The notes below the pieces were generated by a model that did not search any database, was not told the origin of the DNA, and saw only the letters and a list, made by a program, of their open reading frames with translations. Both the position numbers and the translations under genes were made by a program. A stretch of 63,409 nt of DNA, counting the filler, from Parasitella parasitica NRRL 2501 (Eukaryota; Fungi; Mucoromycota), in the NCBI GenBank assembly GCA_025201805.1. It is 15 parts of 14 records of this genome, joined end to end, with 100 filler letters (N's around TTAATTAATTAA, not from the genome) between each part and the next. Parts side by side here need not be neighbours in the genome. Positions count along the whole stretch, not along the records: positions 42,211 to 43,904 come from MU619458.1; 14 more parts are not named here. One strand, written 5' to 3'. The stretch's first letter is position 1; every line of letters starts with the position of its first letter. Below are positions 4,142 through 43,904 of this stretch, one piece after another.

Positions 4142-5778
4142 ATGTTTGAAAACTTTTTATTTAAAATAGTTTTATTTATGATACTAATGTCTGAACCAGG
4201 GTCCACTTTTCCTATGATACGGGTATCATTAATAAGCAAAGGAGTTATTAGATTAAATTCATTTTTTCTTTTTGCAATTGTAGACTTACAATCTTTGTCT
4301 TCCATAGCCTCTCGGAAGAGGTTGCTTTCATTAGCAGAGCCGGAACTCCTGCTTTTGCCGTTGCGGGAACGACGACGTTTGCCCTGACCATTGGGGCGAT
4401 TTTGGTAGGGATGTGATCCAGACGACTGGACAGAATTGACCTTGAAGGATGCCTTCATGGCCAGATACTCGGGGCATTCGTGGCCATGGAACCAGGTCTT
4501 ACCACACCACTTACAGAAGGTGTTTCCAGAAGCCTTCTTCGGTACGTTTGACCTATCAACACGTCTTGAGGTTGATGCTCCCTTATTTAATCGACAATCC
4601 TTTTCGTTGTGGCGAGCTTGAGCACCACCATGATTCGAGCAAAAGAAACTAGTAGGTGACGAGCCAGCAGGGGAGGAGAATCCAGCTGTGGACGATTTTG
4701 GAGAAACACCGCCGCCACGAGAAGCACCACCTTTCTTGATGCTGATGAATGAAATAGGGCACTTTTGTCCATTGAGTATGTTGAGAGCGCACGTTACGAT
4801 TTGATTTGCTGTGAAATCAGATTGGCCAGGATATTGGGCACAGAGAACCGAATTGATTTGAATCTGCCACGAGGCAGGAAAACCCAAAAGAAAAGTATCA
4901 CCCAATGTGGTATCCTCAGAAGAATATCCGGCTTCGAGCATGGCACGAGCAAAGCGATTGTAGTATTCTTCTGTCGTTTCTCCAGGTTTCATGGTAGCGG
5001 TTTGTACCTCTCGACGAGCATCCAATCTTAAGGCAGCATTATTAAATTTCTTTGTAAACAGGTCCTTTGCAGCAGACCAAGTACCAGCCTTCAACAACTC
5101 TTGGTTCAACCACAAATCCAAATCGTACGGAATGGTTAACGGAATGTACCGACGCCAAACATCTTCAACAGATTTGCCAGATGACAGGATAACCTTCTCG
5201 AAGGACCTCAAAAAATGGTGGATGGAATCATATGTCAATTCGTTTGGAAAGTACTTGGTTGCACTTGAACGCAATTGGAACTTTGGAAGGTCTTGCTTGG
5301 ACAGAGAAATTCCTTCATTGTCTCCAGACAATGCAGAGGTAACATTTGCTTCAGATAGCTTGGCAGATGATTTTAATGTAAAGATTAACTTGTTCATCCC
5401 CTCGACTTTTGCACGCATTTCCGAAATATGATTTTGCCCTTGCTCGTTATCAAGATCAGTACCTTCAATCATGTCAATGAGCAACCCGATATATTGATCC
5501 CTCTGGTGCAATAACTTCTTTACAGCGTCAATTGGATTGGAGGAGACCATGGAGATGGAAGAAGTAATTGATGAGGCAGAGTCAGGAGCTGATATAACTG
5601 GGGGAGCCTGAGGCATGTCTTCGTCTTGAAGATTGAGGTGCACTTCGCGCATACCAATCTCCACTTGAGTCAGAGAAGGGTCACCGGCAATTCCAGGAGC
5701 AGAAATGGGAACGGTTGGCTGAAGTGGAGCTTCAACAGCAGAACCTTCGATAGGTGAGTTAGCACCAGGGACAGCAGC
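4142..5778 (-). mobile_element. Ty3/gypsy gag-protease (partial, open across the whole contig)
   Basis: Gag capsid-like region (MKPGETTEEYYNRF), Cys/His knuckles (CSNH..HNEKDC; CKWCGKTWFHGHEC), protease-like motif IIGKVDPGSDISII. Confidence 0.85.
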
Positions 5779-5878
5779 NNNNNNNNNNNNNNNNNNNNNN
5801 NNNNNNNNNNNNNNNNNNNNNNTTAATTAATTAANNNNNNNNNNNNNNNNNNNNNNNNNNNNNNNNNNNNNNNNNNNN

Positions 5879-6022
5879 TATATTTTAGTATAAATAGAGA
5901 TCATATCTTATGTCAATAAAAGTCTTCAGTTTTGTATCTGGTTTTATTCAGAAAGTCTTTATTACTTTACACAAATCTTATTTACATAACATTACGCTGC
6001 GCCCTTTGACACTGGCACAACA
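5879..6022 (+). repeat. Partial LTR, family B
   Basis: Reverse complement of 21216-21360; contains TATAAATA and AATAAA and ends CAACA. Confidence 0.8.
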
Positions 6023-6246
6023 AGCTAATCGTTATAAATGTGAATCGTTCATTGATAAGTTGAGCTTCGCAATTTAGAATAGGTAGAACCCAAATAGATG
6101 GTTTCTTATACAAGACATTCTATTGAATACTTCTATTTACTAGATAGAATAATCGATGCCATTTAACCTTAGATCCGATTAGGAACGGTTGCCATAAAAA
6201 CTGAGTTGAAATAGTGGTAACCATGGTATTCTATGGATAGAACAAA

Positions 6247-6800
6247 GATAATGCTGATAGTAATGATTCTTCGTCGTCCTCAGTGATTTATCAGAAAAGT
6301 TCAAATAGAAATTAATCAGGTGAAGATCCGTTTATTACATTCAAAAATAGAGGGTTTATATACTTCCTATGAACTGAGGGAAGCGATGTGGGGATAAAGG
6401 TTTTAGTGATGAGATCCGGGAGATAGGGTAGATTGTATCTATCCCAAATGTCATGTCATATAATTTTATGATCTGATGATTTACTTTTCAGTATGAGTTT
6501 ATATTACATTGACATCCGGTTTTAGAATTGATACATCACTCAGACGAGAGTAATCAAACCTTTGCTGTGGCTAGAATGGCCAACAAGAGCAAGAAAGCGA
6601 GAAAAGACATCTCAATGATATATATCTTGATTGTAAGCATCTCAATAGTGATTATTTTAGACAGATGCTTAGTAATAATATGAACACTAATGGCCTTCTT
6701 TATCTACCTGTTATTCTAAAATCCCAGAATGGTGTTAAAGTCAACACTTGGTTCCTGCTGGACATTGGATGCACTTTTAGTGCTATCTCCTCTCAACTGG
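6247..6800 (+). pseudogene. Degenerate gag-protease fragment, paralog of 40622-40912
   Basis: High nucleotide identity to 40622-40912; split by the solo LTR at 6284-6538. Confidence 0.85.
6284..6538. repeat. Solo LTR, family E, with CTCAG target-site duplication
   Basis: TG...CA ends flanked by CTCAG on both sides; removing it restores colinearity with ~40655. Confidence 0.85.
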
Positions 6801-7501
6801 TTGATTTTATGCGTCTTGAAACGGATATATGAGAACTGTTCGCGATATGATCGGTTTGATCAGGTGGTAATCTTTTAACTTGAGAGATTATGAATTCAGA
6901 TGTAATTAACAAGCTAAAAATTACGAAATGAATTAGAGCTATGTTAATAAACATCATCCAGTTGATCCTCTCTGTTATTATCATGTTGTAACTTACAAAT
7001 ATATAGATGCTGCCTCCTTGCTTCTTTTTTCGTCGAGTATTATATATGATCTAGTGTATCATCTCTTTTCACAATTAATGTAGGTGGTTATTTGTTATTG
7101 TCGTCACAACATAATTTATTATACTCATGCACTTTTCTTGTATATAGCAAATACCTCAGCGGCTGCTTCAATTTCAAATCGGGTAATAGCTAATCTTGCA
7201 CTGTTTTCCATCATTGCCTGTGTGAACCAAAGGCTACATAATCAAGACAATATCGTATGTAACGATATGAAATGAAACCAATAATAAATTACTGGTCCAT
7301 ACTACAAAAATTGAGAAATAAACAAAAGTTACAGCTACATTTTTATACGCAAATTTTACTTTTTTGAGCACATTTTTTTGAGTGTACGGGCACATTTTCG
7401 NNNNNNNNNNNNNNNNNNNNNNNNNNNNNNNNNNNNNNNNNNNNTTAATTAATTAANNNNNNNNNNNNNNNNNNNNNNNNNNNNNNNNNNNNNNNNNNNN
7501 T

Positions 7502-8356
7502 GATTCGCCCCGCAGAGTAGGGAGAAAGCCTGTTACTAGCGATGAGGAGGATTCGGACAACCCAAAGTCAAAAAGAAAGGCACAGAACCGAGCAGCACAG
7601 AGGGCTTTTAGGGAAAGAAAGGAAAACCACGTTCGTGTTCTTGAAGATAGGGTCAAGGAATTGGAAGAGCTGAATTTGGACAAGAACTCGAAGCTGCTGC
7701 TGGAAAACGAAAAACTGAAAGAAATGATTGCCCGTTTGCAAAATGAAAATGCAGCTCTGCTGGGATCAACCGTGTCGTTTGATAGTCCTCTGAATTCCCT
7801 CGGCGATGAAAGGCCCCAGAAGATCATCCGCCAGAACAACCTGACGGCATCACCCACTGCTAATTTCGACAGCTTGAGCAGCGGCTATTCCACATCATCG
7901 AAGAGTAGGTCAAACACACCCGAAATTCAGATCCGCCATCAGCTGACCATTGACGACATCTTGAAAAGCGACTTGCCTTCCAAGGCACTGCTTGATCATT
8001 CGGAACTGCTCAACAACGATAAATTGGATTACGGCTCACAGCTGGACGATATATTAAACCAAAACCACCTTGCGTTTGAAGCAAATCCGTCTCAGTTTGA
8101 TTTCTTTTATCCTCTCACAGCGTCAAATGACATATTAAACACTGCTGCGATTACGTTGCCGCCCGAGGGAGAAAAGGACAGGGAAATCAAGTCCATCACA
8201 AAGGTGTGGGACAAAATTTCCCAGCATCCAAGATTCGATGAGATCGACATGGATGTGCTGTGTGATGAGATGCACAAAAAGGCGACTTGCCAAGATTTTG
8301 ATCATGATAAAGAGATGGAAAAGCTTGTTGATCAATATTATCCCGCAGAAATCTAA
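7502..8356 (+). CDS. Yap1/AP-1-like bZIP transcription factor (5' partial)
   Basis: KRKAQNRAAQRAFRERKE basic region and zipper; C-terminal cysteine-rich domain DMDVLCDEMHKKATC. Confidence 0.9.
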   Translation, partial: DSPRRVGRKPVTSDEEDSDNPKSKRKAQNRAAQRAFRERKENHVRVLEDRVKELEELNLDKNSKLLLENEKLKEMIARLQNENAALLGSTVSFDSPLNSLGDERPQKIIRQNNLTASPTANFDSLSSGYSTSSKSRSNTPEIQIRHQLTIDDILKSDLPSKALLDHSELLNNDKLDYGSQLDDILNQNHLAFEANPSQFDFFYPLTASNDILNTAAITLPPEGEKDREIKSITKVWDKISQHPRFDEIDMDVLCDEMHKKATCQDFDHDKEMEKLVDQYYPAEI

Positions 8357-8549
8357 CCCACCCACCCACGCACACACACACACACACGCACACACGCACA
8401 CACACACACCCATATACACGCACACACACACACACACAGAAACTCGCTGTTCTTTTATTTGCACTGTTTTCATGTCTATTATGTATATCATTCATCGTTT
8501 ATTTCTTTCTTTATTTCAATAAAAAAAAAAAAAAAAAAAAAATAAAAAA

Positions 8550-8592
<43 letters not shown>
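8357..8592. repeat. (CA)n microsatellite and poly(A) tract
   Basis: CA-rich 8357-8438; A-run 8521-8592. Confidence 0.9.
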
Positions 8593-8594
<2 letters not shown>

Positions 8595-9980
8595 AAAGTT
8601 TACTTCAAGAACTCATCAGTGTGATTCCCATAATGATACAAGCAAGAGAAACATATGGGCTCAGTCTTTCTCCTACTCTTGCAGCCTTCCAAAACAATCC
8701 AAGCACACTATCATTACCAAGTCAGTTGAAAGATCCTCCATCCATCGAGATTTCTCGCTTACCCAGTCTTTTTTCTATCTAGTAAAGAGGGTGCTTGTGC
8801 CCTCACGTAAGTGCAGGTGCAAATCAAAAGTAAAATTACCAGCAATAACGATTGAAAGTTAAAAATGGCAGACTACAGAGAGCTATTTAGGTCACTTGTC
8901 TGCTTGAACGACTGTATTTCACTAGTTACCATTTTATATTGTGCGTCGAGCTGTGGTAAAAAAAAAACAAAGGGCAACTGGGAATATCAAACACACATTA
9001 GCGCTTTATAATGCTGGACGAGTCACATTACGACACGAAGAGAGAATGGGTTCATCATGATGAATGGCTGATAATAGATCGTTCACAGCGCGCATCTACA
9101 ACATTCAAGCACTACTAGAGTGATCATACCACCGTACACCTTGTCAAAGTCTCAAAACATTTGAGGATAATTGGCTTGACAGTTAGACGCTGAGTGATAT
9201 AAGATGTTCATTGCATTTTGAGCAAATTCGTCAATGCAAGGAAATCATGTATCGTCAGGGTTCTACAAAACACTGGTCCGGCAGCGATTGCTCCAAAAAC
9301 CATGCCCAAATATGTACTTGAATCTTATTTTTCGTATTTATACAATGTGTATATCATCAGTGAATAGCTACTGTTTGCAGAATTTTATCATCACATTAAG
9401 CAAAGCTTCAGGTCTTTATTTAACATATCTATCACCAATTCCAGTTCCTTGCGAGACTCATCGTGCAGCTTTTTAACATGCGGTTGCATTTTACGGTTGT
9501 ACAATGGTGGACTGACAGCGGATTATTACACGCAATATTGTCCCAGAAACATACAGACTTACCGAATATCATCTTTATCCTTGAAATATTTCAACTGACA
9601 CAGGTTTCTGACAATGTCATATTCAATGCCCTTTCTCAAAGAAGCATTGTTCAAAAGCATCAGTGTATTTTTCGCTACCAATATACGTTGGTTACTTTTC
9701 TTCTCCTCAAAGAAGGCGGTAGAATTTGTCATGTACAAATACCTTTGATTTCAATTTCTGGATCAGTCAAATATAGCTTATTTTCAAAGCCTTGACGGAT
9801 CAAGGATTTGACATGTCTCTTATTGACGCCATTCACAGCCGCATCTCCTGCTCTCAAGAATTGACGATACCGACTGCAGATGCTCATGTGTGGTGAATGA
9901 CAGTAGTCGCTCGGCGCAAGGCTGCAACATTTACCACTTTGAAGGGAGCTTAGACTTCGTGACTATGACATACAGCACAG

Positions 9981-9984
9981 CCAC

Positions 9985-10025
<41 letters not shown>
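9981..10025. repeat. (CA)n microsatellite
   Basis: Seen directly. Confidence 0.9.
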
Positions 10026-10028
<3 letters not shown>

Positions 10029-10601
10029 CAGCATAACGTCTAACGGGATCTATAGTATCTAGTACGTGCTGGTCATTGTCGATGGTAATAATATTATTAC
10101 GAAAAAAAAAAAAGTGCCAAGACATAACGTTGCAACAGATACGATAGTTTGAGCTTTTAAAGATACAAAAAGACTTTATAGCCGTGTCATGTTTGGCAGC
10201 CAGGATTTTAACTGGGTTAAATTGTGTTAGATGCACTCACTCTTGAACTTGCGTTTCTTTGATTCGGGTTGGCTAACTTGAACGATGTCGCAGTTTGCTT
10301 TGTTCTAAATGCTTTAAGTCGGTAATTTAATACGGGCCAATAGTAAAGCAGTTCCTGAGCGGACGTTATGATGAGGATCAAGACTATAGCTGTCAAAACT
10401 TGTATCAAACCACGCTCGTTTATTGTAAAAGGACAACGGAATACGGCAAGAAACCATTTTCTAGTTGTTCTTTTTTATTTTTATTAATATCTTCTATATC
10501 CTCAGCTACAGAAATGTCCTTGTTGCATGACCCATTGTTGCTTTTCCACAAGAAACCATAACCTCAAGTTGTGCCTATCCTTATATATCTATCTGACACC
10601 C

Positions 10602-42210: not shown

Positions 42211-43232
42211 TAAGTTTGCATGCTTGGTGTCACAAATGACGCTTTCATGGTGAGGATCAAAATTCATAGGTGTAACCTTTCCTTTTGCCAATGAAGCCTT
42301 AATCTCGTCGGCATATGCGTTATGAACTAAAAGGGAAATGACCCCTTTAGTTGGGAATTGAACAGCTAGAACTCGACGATTGGATATGCCAATGATAGCC
42401 AAACGCTTTCGAACTGTACGCTGGTTTGTACGTGCTGGATTTCTGAAGTGGATGAATTGGTATCCAGTAGGGCCTGTGTTTTCTGTAAATCCACGATATG
42501 CCCAATTTAGCATACCTTCAGTAGGGGGGTCTTTTTTTGTTGTTTTTTGAGTTTTCAATTGTTTTTGTGCTTTTTGAGTGTTTTGTGCTTTTTTTGGTGT
42601 ATTGAGATTTTTCTTGGCAGCATTGGCCCATCGGCTGTCGGCAGTAGTGGAAGAAGAAGCTGTTGATTGTTGAAGGGCCTGAGTGTTATTGTTACTATTA
42701 ACAGCAGAGTTGTTAGTAGTCATATTAGTTTTTTGAGTCTTTTTTAATTGTTCGTTTTCAAGTAATTATGCTTTTTCCAATTGTAATTTCAAGTCTGCAT
42801 TTTCTTGCTGGAGCTGCTCTACTAGAGAGACTCGTTGTTTAAGTTCAGTAACTTCTGCCAAAAATGGAGCAAGTTGCTGTTGAATGAGTTTCTGAATATC
42901 TTCCATGTGGTGGGCTGAGACTGATGTTGCAGGTTTTTTTGTTGGTGTGATGTTTGGTGTCTTTGTTTCGAATTTACGTTTTGTGCGAGTAGCAGCTACT
43001 GTGCTAATGATTGGGCTCGCAGTTGCGGGGGTTGGTGTGATGTTTCCCGAAATGGGATCTTTACCAGTAGGAGAGATTGGAATTTTTAAAAATAGTTTTG
43101 AGGAGGTTTTTTAACAGGGGGAAAGTGAAGCGTGTTAATTAAGATAAAAAGGAAGTTTGCAGGATGCCTGGATAGATTGAAAAAGTATAAAAAGAGGTGA
43201 TTTTTCAACGCGCGAGAAACTACCTATACTTC
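42211..43232 (-). mobile_element. LINE 5' end with ORF1 (in-frame TAA at 42766-42768)
   Basis: Coiled coil then GYQFIHF..RLAIIGISNRRVLAVQFPTKGVISLLVHNAY..FDP; the first ~50 nt match 22890-22943. Confidence 0.85.
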
Positions 43233-43246
43233 TCTTCGGTAGTATA
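43233..43246 (+). pseudogene. tRNA-Asp 5' fragment (nt 1-14)
   Basis: TCTTCGGTAGTATA is identical to the start of the tRNA-Asp at 22889 and has the same upstream context. Confidence 0.85.
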
Positions 43247-43904
43247 AACTAAAGTTTTTATTTAATAAGATAGTAGCTATAAAGATCTTCGCTATTTAGC
43301 CATTTGATCAACTACAATGATAAGATAATAAAGTTAAATGATAAAATATAAAAACTAGACAAGCTAGAAAAAAAAAAAAAGGGGGATAATGTATGAAGGG
43401 GCGGATTACGCAGAGACAAAATCCTGAGAAGCACTCAGGGTATCAGAACAATGAACAAATACTAGTTGACCAGGAGACGGCTCGTCATCAAAAGTGGCTG
43501 CAGTGTGAGATAGCTTGTCGATCTTGAAAAGTAACTGATTGAGCACAGGCCATGTGTGTTGCCAGTGCTGTGTATGAAATGAGATAAACTTTTTCGGTAG
43601 TAGATTGAGCAGAAAATCGATTTCTGTTGCAGGCAATTCAGGGCGTGTGTAGTTCTTAATATGTTGACGTAAGAGTATATCAAGGAGCTCGAGATTGCTG
43701 TGCAGTAATGGACAAGAGAGGAAGAAATGACGTTTGGAAATAGCAGTAGTGTTATCACAGGGACAAAGAATTGGTGTAGAGGACTTTGGTATGAGCCAGC
43801 CCATGCGCCATTTGATGAGACGATGGCGTTCTTTGGTTGTACAAGGAATAAACAAAATAGGATCGCTGGTAGGTACGGGATCCGAGCGGCACTGCTTGAT
43901 ATTT
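43247..43904 (-). mobile_element. LINE 3' end (ORF2 C-terminus to 43406 plus 3' UTR)
   Basis: DPILFIP..ERHRLIKWRMGWL..CPC..HF..C; 3' stem-loop and A-rich end. Confidence 0.88.

Follow-up and report, generated by a model that had tools for sequence, protein, structure and literature searches.

A tRNA-Asp stub between two head-to-tail LINE copies of Parasitella parasitica: a probable array of a tRNA-gene-specific retrotransposon

We analyzed a junction between two copies of a long interspersed nuclear element (LINE) from the fungus Parasitella parasitica NRRL 2501 (assembly GCA_025201805.1). The window, meaning the whole stretch of DNA under study, has 63,409 nucleotides (nt) and is made of parts of this genome joined by filler. 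The genome DNA examined here is the piece at positions 42211-43904 (record MU619458.1), in which both LINE parts are read on the minus strand. With a probability of about 0.8, this piece covers a junction inside a head-to-tail array formed by a ~5-kb tRNA-gene-specific LINE, which belongs to a subfamily that inserts into tRNA-Asp(GTC). The preliminary description of the piece had explained it by repeated insertion into the same tRNA-Asp gene. This model gained support from target-site duplications (TSDs) in Zychaea, the head of an array in the metagenomic contig L030, a truncated copy in the Parasitella locus L003, and a 180-nt contig that covers the outer end of an array.

The anatomy of the junction was observed directly. 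On the minus strand, the order is ...cttattaaataaaaactttagtt (end 43247), tatactaccgaaga (43246-43233), and gaagtataggtagtttctcgcgcgttg... (from 43232 downward). The first LINE, copy 'a' (43247-43904), contributes the end of open reading frame 2 (ORF2) with its stop at 43406-43408 and a 3′ untranslated region (UTR), as expected of the LINE 3′ tail described before. Its tail closes with ...AAAAACTTTAGTT, the last base being 43247. The next 14 nt (43246-43233) read TATACTACCGAAGA, the antisense of TCTTCGGTAGTATA, and correspond exactly to the tRNA-Asp nt 14 to 1 that had been claimed. The second LINE, copy 'b' (42211-43232), starts with a leader that opens GAAGTATAGGTAGTTTCTCGCGCGTTG... after the stub and is followed by ORF1. 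The leader and the start codon of ORF1 bear out the earlier assignment of a second LINE 5′ end (Table 1).

The tRNA identity of the stub was likewise established directly. The 14-mer TCTTCGGTAGTATA occurs once in the window, where none is expected by chance even with one mismatch. Followed by the canonical GTGG, it matched in 20 metagenome contigs, and in nine of these ARAGORN called a tRNA-Asp(gtc) starting exactly at the match; no other isotype starts there. Since the same bases with GTGG open these tRNA-Asp(gtc) genes, the stub is, by sequence identity, a genuine tRNA-Asp(GTC) nt 1-14, the reference genes being metagenomic and not the source species' own. It comprises the acceptor 5′ strand, U8, A9, the 5′ strand of the D-stem, and A14, that is, the first half of the A box. 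ARAGORN and Rfam revealed no complete tRNA and no other RNA family in the piece, which is expected of a 14-nt stub. Nt 14 is the last tRNA base of the Asp stub in the window, in the loci L003 and L007, at both sites of L008, and in the array-end contig assembled from reads (Logan). The stubs of the three Parasitella loci (L003, L007, and L008) are identical to that of the window. We interpret the Asp stub as a copy that arose from a target-site duplication.

The family of the element was determined from its proteins. The ORF fragments of the window gave no match in Pfam or NCBIfam, and the Cys-His knuckle in the ORF2 end is without a Pfam model. Their products, looked up as exact sequences, corresponded to no gene on record. 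An exhaustive HMMER search with the 165-residue ORF2 end found 106 relatives. The long relatives (P0021, P0034, P0056, P0073, P0053, and P0111) align by their C-termini and bear Exo_endo_phos or Exo_endo_phos_2 together with RVT_1. Because the long homologues carry these domains, the ORF2 end is assigned by homology to a non-LTR (long terminal repeat) retrotransposon of the APE (apurinic/apyrimidinic endonuclease) type, the piece itself holding the C-terminus alone. The nearest solved protein to ORF2 is human L1 ORF2p (E about 1e-11), and ORF1 has no solved or Pfam relative. The predicted layout of the element is a coiled-coil ORF1 and an ORF2 composed of an APE endonuclease, a reverse transcriptase (RT), and a Cys-His C-terminal domain. 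The ORF2 end is 88% identical to a P. parasitica protein; ORF1 is 95% identical to P0124, 65-78% identical to Parasitella ORF1, and 31% identical to the ORF1 of L030. Farther relatives come from Zychaea, Syncephalastrum, Phascolomyces, and Lichtheimia, and all named relatives are Mucorales; the host belongs to the Mucoraceae. Marks of target-primed reverse transcription were found in the family, namely 5′-truncated copies (L003 and the second copy of L004) and TSDs of 14-16 bp in L004 and 15 bp in L006. The tail motif AATAAAA(A)CTTTnnnn is kept in the Asp-, Glu-, and Pro-targeting subfamilies; together with the predicted stem-loop in the 3′UTR, the conserved tail suggests a stringent recognition of the RNA 3′ end.

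Target-site duplication next to an intact tRNA gene was observed directly in relatives that target other tRNAs. In Zychaea mexicana (L004), copy 1 is full-length (5820 to about 11153, plus strand) and its first base adjoins nt 1 of an intact tRNA-Pro(tgg), which lies on the opposite strand at 5746-5819. It ends with ...AAAACTTTTGAA, after which come CTATACCATCAACCC (antisense of tRNA-Pro nt 1-15, with one change) and an unrelated flank. Copy 2, on the other strand, is 5′-truncated; it has the stub GGGTTGATGGTGTA(G) on one side (12723) and an intact tRNA-Pro on the other (14068-14141). The tRNA-Pro 14-mer gave four matches in the 20.7 kb of L004, as compared with 0.08 expected, and they are the two genes and the two stubs. 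On this pattern of matches, stub and intact tRNA-Pro are a target-site duplication of nt 1-14(16) that leaves the whole gene at the LINE 5′ end. The 3′ flanks of the two tRNA-Pro genes are identical, and the genes point toward each other with both LINE copies between them (5700-14190); besides having received two insertions, the locus is therefore an inverted duplication. In Syncephalastrum (L005), an intact tRNA-Gln(ttg) adjoins a LINE 5′ end (CTCTTGTTCTGCTATTCGTCAC) that is homologous to the one of Zychaea (CTCTTGTTCYGCTATTC). A tRNA-Gln stub was searched for on the 3′ side of this element and none was found; its 3′ end seems to be lost.

The metagenomic P0111 family (L030-L035) has intact ORF1 (392 aa) and ORF2 (1372 aa) and also forms arrays. 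Their order is ...AAAAACGTTTGAAC, TAGACCATTGAGGA, and 5′UTR, with the stub present at four sites in three contigs (L030-L032). TAGACCATTGAGGA is the antisense of TCCTCAATGGTCTA, of which nt 8-14 equal the D arm of tRNA-Glu. At the left edge of L030, ahead of the first LINE, we found the antisense of TCCTCAATGGTCTAGTGGCT, in which the tRNA sequence does not stop at nt 14 but goes on into the D loop (GTGGCT). The L030 array is thus headed by more than a stub, the contig ending after 20 nt of tRNA. A target gene was therefore seen beside the element in Zychaea (tRNA-Pro) and Syncephalastrum (tRNA-Gln), and in part in L030 (20 nt, at the contig edge). The insertion points are TAGTATA|GTGG for Asp, TGGTGTA|GTGG for Pro, TGGTCTA|GTGG for the Glu-like tRNA, and TGGTGTA|ATCGG for Gln, if the same site is used there. 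The position matches across the four tRNA types and is the middle of the A box. A more distant copy of Phascolomyces (L006, 9936-11394) lies in non-tRNA DNA and has a 15-bp TSD, CTATTTATCCGTTTG, which makes a stagger of ~14-15 bp a family trait. As L006 is outside any tRNA, not all lineages are tRNA-specific.

These relatives bear on the explanation that the 14-mer is the LINE's own terminus, for example a tRNA-derived 3′ end, and that the two LINEs are joined directly with no tRNA gene involved. Within the Asp subfamily, the LINE tail is never seen without the 14-mer, none of the Asp copies was found to have an intact tRNA-Asp next to it, and transcription through into the stub would make the stub part of the RNA. 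However, the stubs differ by subfamily, each fitting another tRNA (Pro, Glu-like, or Asp), and in Zychaea the intact tRNA-Pro at the other end of the same copy starts with the 14-16 nt that make up the stub. Moreover, the stub in L007 stands at a LINE 5′ end without an intact tail directly before it, and the distant relative L006 makes a 15-bp TSD of unrelated DNA. A terminus belonging to the LINE itself is very unlikely in our estimate.

Further evidence for insertion into tRNA-Asp came from the Parasitella loci. In L003, a tail is followed by TATACTACCGAAGA and by a LINE that begins within ORF2 and is reduced to its last ~480 nt. This copy, 5′-truncated at insertion directly at tRNA nt 1, indicates an independent target-primed event. 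The tail, stub, and 5′-end junction was also present in independent assemblies, namely in Parasitella L008 at 11514, in the metagenome contig L002, and in short Logan contigs.

Logan contigs from four runs of four studies were used as evidence for the junction in reads of the source organism. The k-mers at 43180-43293 have ~10x the depth of the LINE bodies, which means that this type of junction is present many times. One contig of 180 nt consists of a unique sequence, ...GGTAGCAGGTTCG, and then, from exactly 43233, of TCTTCGGTAGTATA and AACTAAAG... This succession of unique flank, stub, and LINE tail is the outer end of an array, with the break at tRNA nt 1. A contig of 4865 nt shows that copy 'b' has a length of ~5.0 kb and is followed by a divergent tail, the stub, and the start of another LINE 5′ end; from this order, at least three copies are in tandem. 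Between neighbouring copies, the tail regions have diverged, with 34 differences over 173 nt. The unitigs are interrupted at 43224 and at 43245/43246, which means that the sequence branches at those positions. Judging by depth, about half of the k-mers made of 5′ end and stub go into neither of the two tail variants seen. Intact tRNA heads or additional tail variants would fit these k-mers, which prove neither.

The same data allowed us to weigh the explanation that the join is an assembly artefact, in which dispersed LINE copies with common ends were collapsed. The approximately tenfold repetition of the junction zone, the unitig breaks at 43224 and 43245/43246, and the many gaps around these LINEs in the Parasitella scaffolds speak in its favor. 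On the other hand, the same order is found in independent assemblies of different organisms or samples (L002, L003, L008, L030, L031, and L032) and in the 4865-nt Logan contig of the source organism itself. An artefact is thus the least probable of the explanations considered, with hardly any chance of being correct.

Another explanation is that the array grew by tandem duplication or unequal crossing-over of one unit of LINE plus stub, and not by repeated retrotransposition. Tandem repeats of ~5 kb can grow by recombination, the window piece alone does not separate the two processes, and the pair of tRNA-Pro and LINE in Zychaea, with its identical tRNA 3′ flank, is part of an inverted segmental duplication. 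Nevertheless, truncation varies among members, as shown by the L003 copy that retains the last ~480 nt after its stub, whereas recombination would copy whole units. The extreme 5′ nucleotides also differ among members of the L030 array (ACTTATCAAGCG vs GAGCTGTTAGCG), and the tails of neighbours are markedly divergent. The truncation in L003, the varied 5′ nucleotides, and the divergent tails argue for successive target-primed insertions and against duplication of whole units, which we consider unlikely, if less so than a terminus of the LINE's own.

Repeated insertion into the tRNA gene would proceed as follows; what we infer is where the nicks fall, in which order the events took place, and that the window's array is headed by an intact tRNA-Asp. 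The endonuclease would nick the tRNA-sense strand in the A box, after nt 14 (TAGTATA^GTGG), and the 3′-OH set free would serve as the primer from which the LINE RNA is reverse-transcribed, starting at the conserved ...AAAAACTTTAGTT tail. Priming from the tail on the sense strand would place the LINE antisense to the tRNA. The other strand would be cut ~14 bp off, at the -1/+1 border of the gene, and fill-in would duplicate tRNA nt 1-14. The expected product is the upstream flank, a dead stub (nt 1-14, without the B box), the LINE in reverse complement, and a complete tRNA gene. Such a rebuilt gene would have both internal promoter boxes intact, only its upstream flank being new, and it would again be a target. 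With the target rebuilt, the next insertion would enter between the previous LINE and the gene and push older copies outward, and each pair of copies in the array would be parted by one leftover stub. Copy 'a' would then be nearer to the gene and younger, and copy 'b' older. The isotype specificity may reside in the endonuclease, or else it may be conferred by a transcript that reads through, ends in the stub, and pairs with the nicked target.

A broader reading joins these points for the whole family and is tentative; we give it somewhat less than an even chance. It assumes a clade of Mucorales LINEs that split into Asp, Glu, Pro, and Gln lineages, each renewing its own target and inheriting its isotype through the RNA. 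All lineages would nick the A box at nt 14/15, with a 14-bp stagger that ends exactly at tRNA +1. Every insertion would restore a working gene and a fresh target, so that LINE arrays would grow. Read-through would give the transcript a 3′ end of UAUACUACCGAAGA, whose 14-bp pairing with the nicked strand would position the start of reverse transcription.

Several observations weigh against an array of LINEs inserted in tRNA-Asp. No intact tRNA-Asp was found beside a LINE 5′ end in the source genome or the Parasitella loci, and the three Asp-type 5′ ends found all sit behind a stub. A scan of the metagenome contigs for a LINE 5′ end with the stub and a non-A base gave no match. The acceptor part deviates in the stubs of L002 (TCTCAGATAGTATA) and L001 (TCTCAAATAGTATA), and neither was matched to a tRNA gene. 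In L031, the DNA next to the LINE 5′ end is not tRNA, which shows that the gene can be lost, either through the insertion or through a later rearrangement. No Logan unitig spans the window junction with 31 nt on each side. Finally, ORF1 of the window contains an in-frame stop, which makes at least this copy 'b' non-functional.

Table 1. Features of the LINE junction at positions 42211-43904 of the window.
Feature	Positions	Strand	Remarks
ORF2 C-terminus, LINE 'a'	43406..43904	(-)	165 codons + stop (43406-43408); frame cut at piece edge 43904
Cys-His knuckle CPCDNTTAISKRHFFLSC, C-x-C-x9-H-x4-C	43712..43765	(-)	within ORF2 C-terminal domain, from translation
3′UTR of LINE 'a', 159 nt	43247..43405	(-)	terminal poly(A) absent; ends in tail AATAAAAACTTTAGTT
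Predicted 3′UTR stem-loop GTAGTTGATC...GATCTTTATAGCTAC	43277..43317	(-)	14 pairs, 3 with compensatory changes
tRNA-Asp(GTC) nt 1-14 stub TCTTCGGTAGTATA	43233..43246	(+)	metagenome tRNA-Asp genes
5′UTR of LINE 'b', 326-nt leader, starts GAAGTATAGGTAGTTTCTCGCGCGTTGAAAAA	42907..43232	(-)	
ORF1 of LINE 'b', from ATG at 42906	42211..42906	(-)	cut at piece edge 42211

The remaining features of the piece are collected in Table 1. The Cys-His knuckle is conserved in P0111, as the alignment shows, and also in L001 and L006. Conservation of the stem-loop, computed from four sequences (window, L002, L008, and L001), weakly suggests that it may serve for recognition by the RT, as in a LINE of the stringent type. 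A run of T13 (LINE sense) at 43368-43380 is internal to the 3′UTR, just past the ORF2 stop. Homopolymer runs occur at the matching place in L002, L003, and L008, and A-runs in L030; all four sequencing runs have a G at 43370, which breaks the T13 run. Inside ORF2, at 43591-43604 (minus strand), TCTACTACCGAAAA equals the stub antisense with 2/14 mismatches, where a rough estimate gives ~0.01 expected in the piece. A match of this type, with three mismatches, is also present in Parasitella L003 (264-277).

The start of the 5′UTR of LINE 'b' was also found directly after the stub in L007 and L008, and its CGCGCGTTRRAAA...TATACTTTTTT motifs are common to the 5′UTR of the L030 family. The border between stub and 5′UTR is uncertain by at most 4 nt (GAAG is repeated), and this repeat is a possible microhomology for 5′ joining. 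A 6-bp inverted repeat (TATACT...AGTATA, 43223-43246) spans the same border, and the first bases of the LINE, AGTATAGGTAG, resemble the sense tRNA-Asp nt 9-19 (AGTATAGTGGT). No terminal repeats were found in the piece. ORF1 consists of a coiled-coil N-terminus, the in-frame TAA (42766-42768), and a conserved C-terminal domain. Exactly the three bases of this TAA are missing in the contigs of runs X3 and X5, and the contig of run X1 has the window form; the ORF1 frame is therefore open there in other isolates.

Some details of the Parasitella loci were observed in addition. In L007 (9649-9680), only AAAT separates the perfect stub and LINE 5′ end from a tail and a stub (TAGACTACCGAGGA) that are both degenerate; the degenerate part may be the remnant of an extremely truncated insertion. 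In L008 (9739-10652), the ORF1 stop (10455-10457) runs straight into 3′UTR and tail with ORF2 absent. This copy, which adjoins assembly gaps, may be an ORF1-only deletion derivative. Beyond its Asp stub, at 10653-10745, there is a tRNA-like flank with A and B boxes (GGGGCTACGGTCCTTTAGCTCAGTGG...GTTCGATTCTC), for which neither ARAGORN nor Rfam gave a call.

Some LINEs are known to be specific for tRNA genes, as exemplified by NeSL-1_TV (tRNA-Pro), LIN15_SM (tRNA-Arg), and LIN25_SM (tRNA-Glu), according to the relevant sections of PMC4640811. As far as these sections of the paper go, the NeSL-group LINEs resemble the Mucorales family in the use of a fixed point inside a multicopy small-RNA gene, in an isotype that varies among related families, and in the safe-haven strategy. 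They differ in having a restriction-like endonuclease in place of the APE type, and the same sections describe neither a gene-rebuilding 14-bp TSD nor resulting LINE arrays for them (PMC4640811). Membership of the NeSL clade was ruled out, as the relatives of the window element have an N-terminal APE domain and not a restriction-like endonuclease C-terminal to RT.

Retrotransposons targeted to RNA polymerase III (Pol III) genes include TRE5/TRE3 and NLTR-A/B of Dictyostelium and Ty1/Ty3 of yeast (PMC5911963). For them too, tRNA genes are landing sites at which insertion does no harm and the gene stays functional; moreover, the TRE elements are LINEs of the APE type and have both ORF1 and ORF2. 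However, TRE and Ty elements integrate 2-150 bp up- or downstream of the coding region of any tRNA gene, guided by TFIIIB/TFIIIC (PMC5911963). The Mucorales LINE, in contrast, inserts inside the gene, at one A-box position, with one isotype per subfamily. TRE-like targeting guided by Pol III was ruled out by insertion within the gene after nt 14(-16) and by isotypes that are the subfamilies' own. The Dada DNA transposons of fish, including Dada-tD for tRNA-Asp, insert specifically inside tRNA genes and have likewise diversified by isotype (PMC8869645). Unlike the Mucorales LINE, they belong to class II and have a DDE transposase, and the described Dada-tV insertions are in the anticodon arm (PMC8869645).

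LINEs of Mucor were catalogued as Grem-LINE1 and 'other LINE', with tRNA targeting unmentioned (10.1101/706580, PMC9963178). Grem-LINE1 is an APE and RT LINE of the same fungal order. It has a zf-CCHC ORF1, zf-RVT, an A-rich 3′ end, A/T-rich targets, and a pericentromeric location (10.1101/706580, PMC9963178). Identity with Grem-LINE1 was rejected: no zf-CCHC (PF00098/PF16588) or zf-RVT (PF13966) was found in the window ORFs, P0126, L030 ORF1, or P0111, and the window tail ends in ...CTTTAGTT and not in poly(A). In the searchable full-text literature (Repbase is outside that scope), we found no description of tRNA-inserting LINEs of Mucorales. LINEs specific for tRNA are known as such; what we rate as new is a family that is of the APE type, is specific for the A box, restores the gene it targets, and forms arrays.

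Precise site specificity is characteristic of the R1/R2-type LINEs of ribosomal DNA (rDNA), in which read-through into the downstream target may help to position the 3′ end. Head-to-tail LINE arrays, such as the telomeric ones and those of Giardia, form when the target is retained at the end of the element. The targets of R1 and R2 are in 28S rDNA and those of the telomeric arrays are telomeres. R1 and R2 inactivate the unit that they enter, whereas the tRNA gene hit by the Mucorales LINE would be rebuilt.

Site-specific LINEs are natural cases of precise RNA-templated gene insertion, for which the R2 system is already under development. An APE-type family that acts on a short motif common to all tRNA genes would add another kind of example, and this family has apparently been re-tuned to several isotypes while the gene that is hit is left intact. 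In the genomics of Mucorales, it would account for part of the 'other LINE' fraction and for some local assembly gaps. It would be a eukaryotic counterpart of the bacterial integrases that enter and regenerate tRNA genes, and tRNA loci would be expected to be hotspots at which strains differ in structure.

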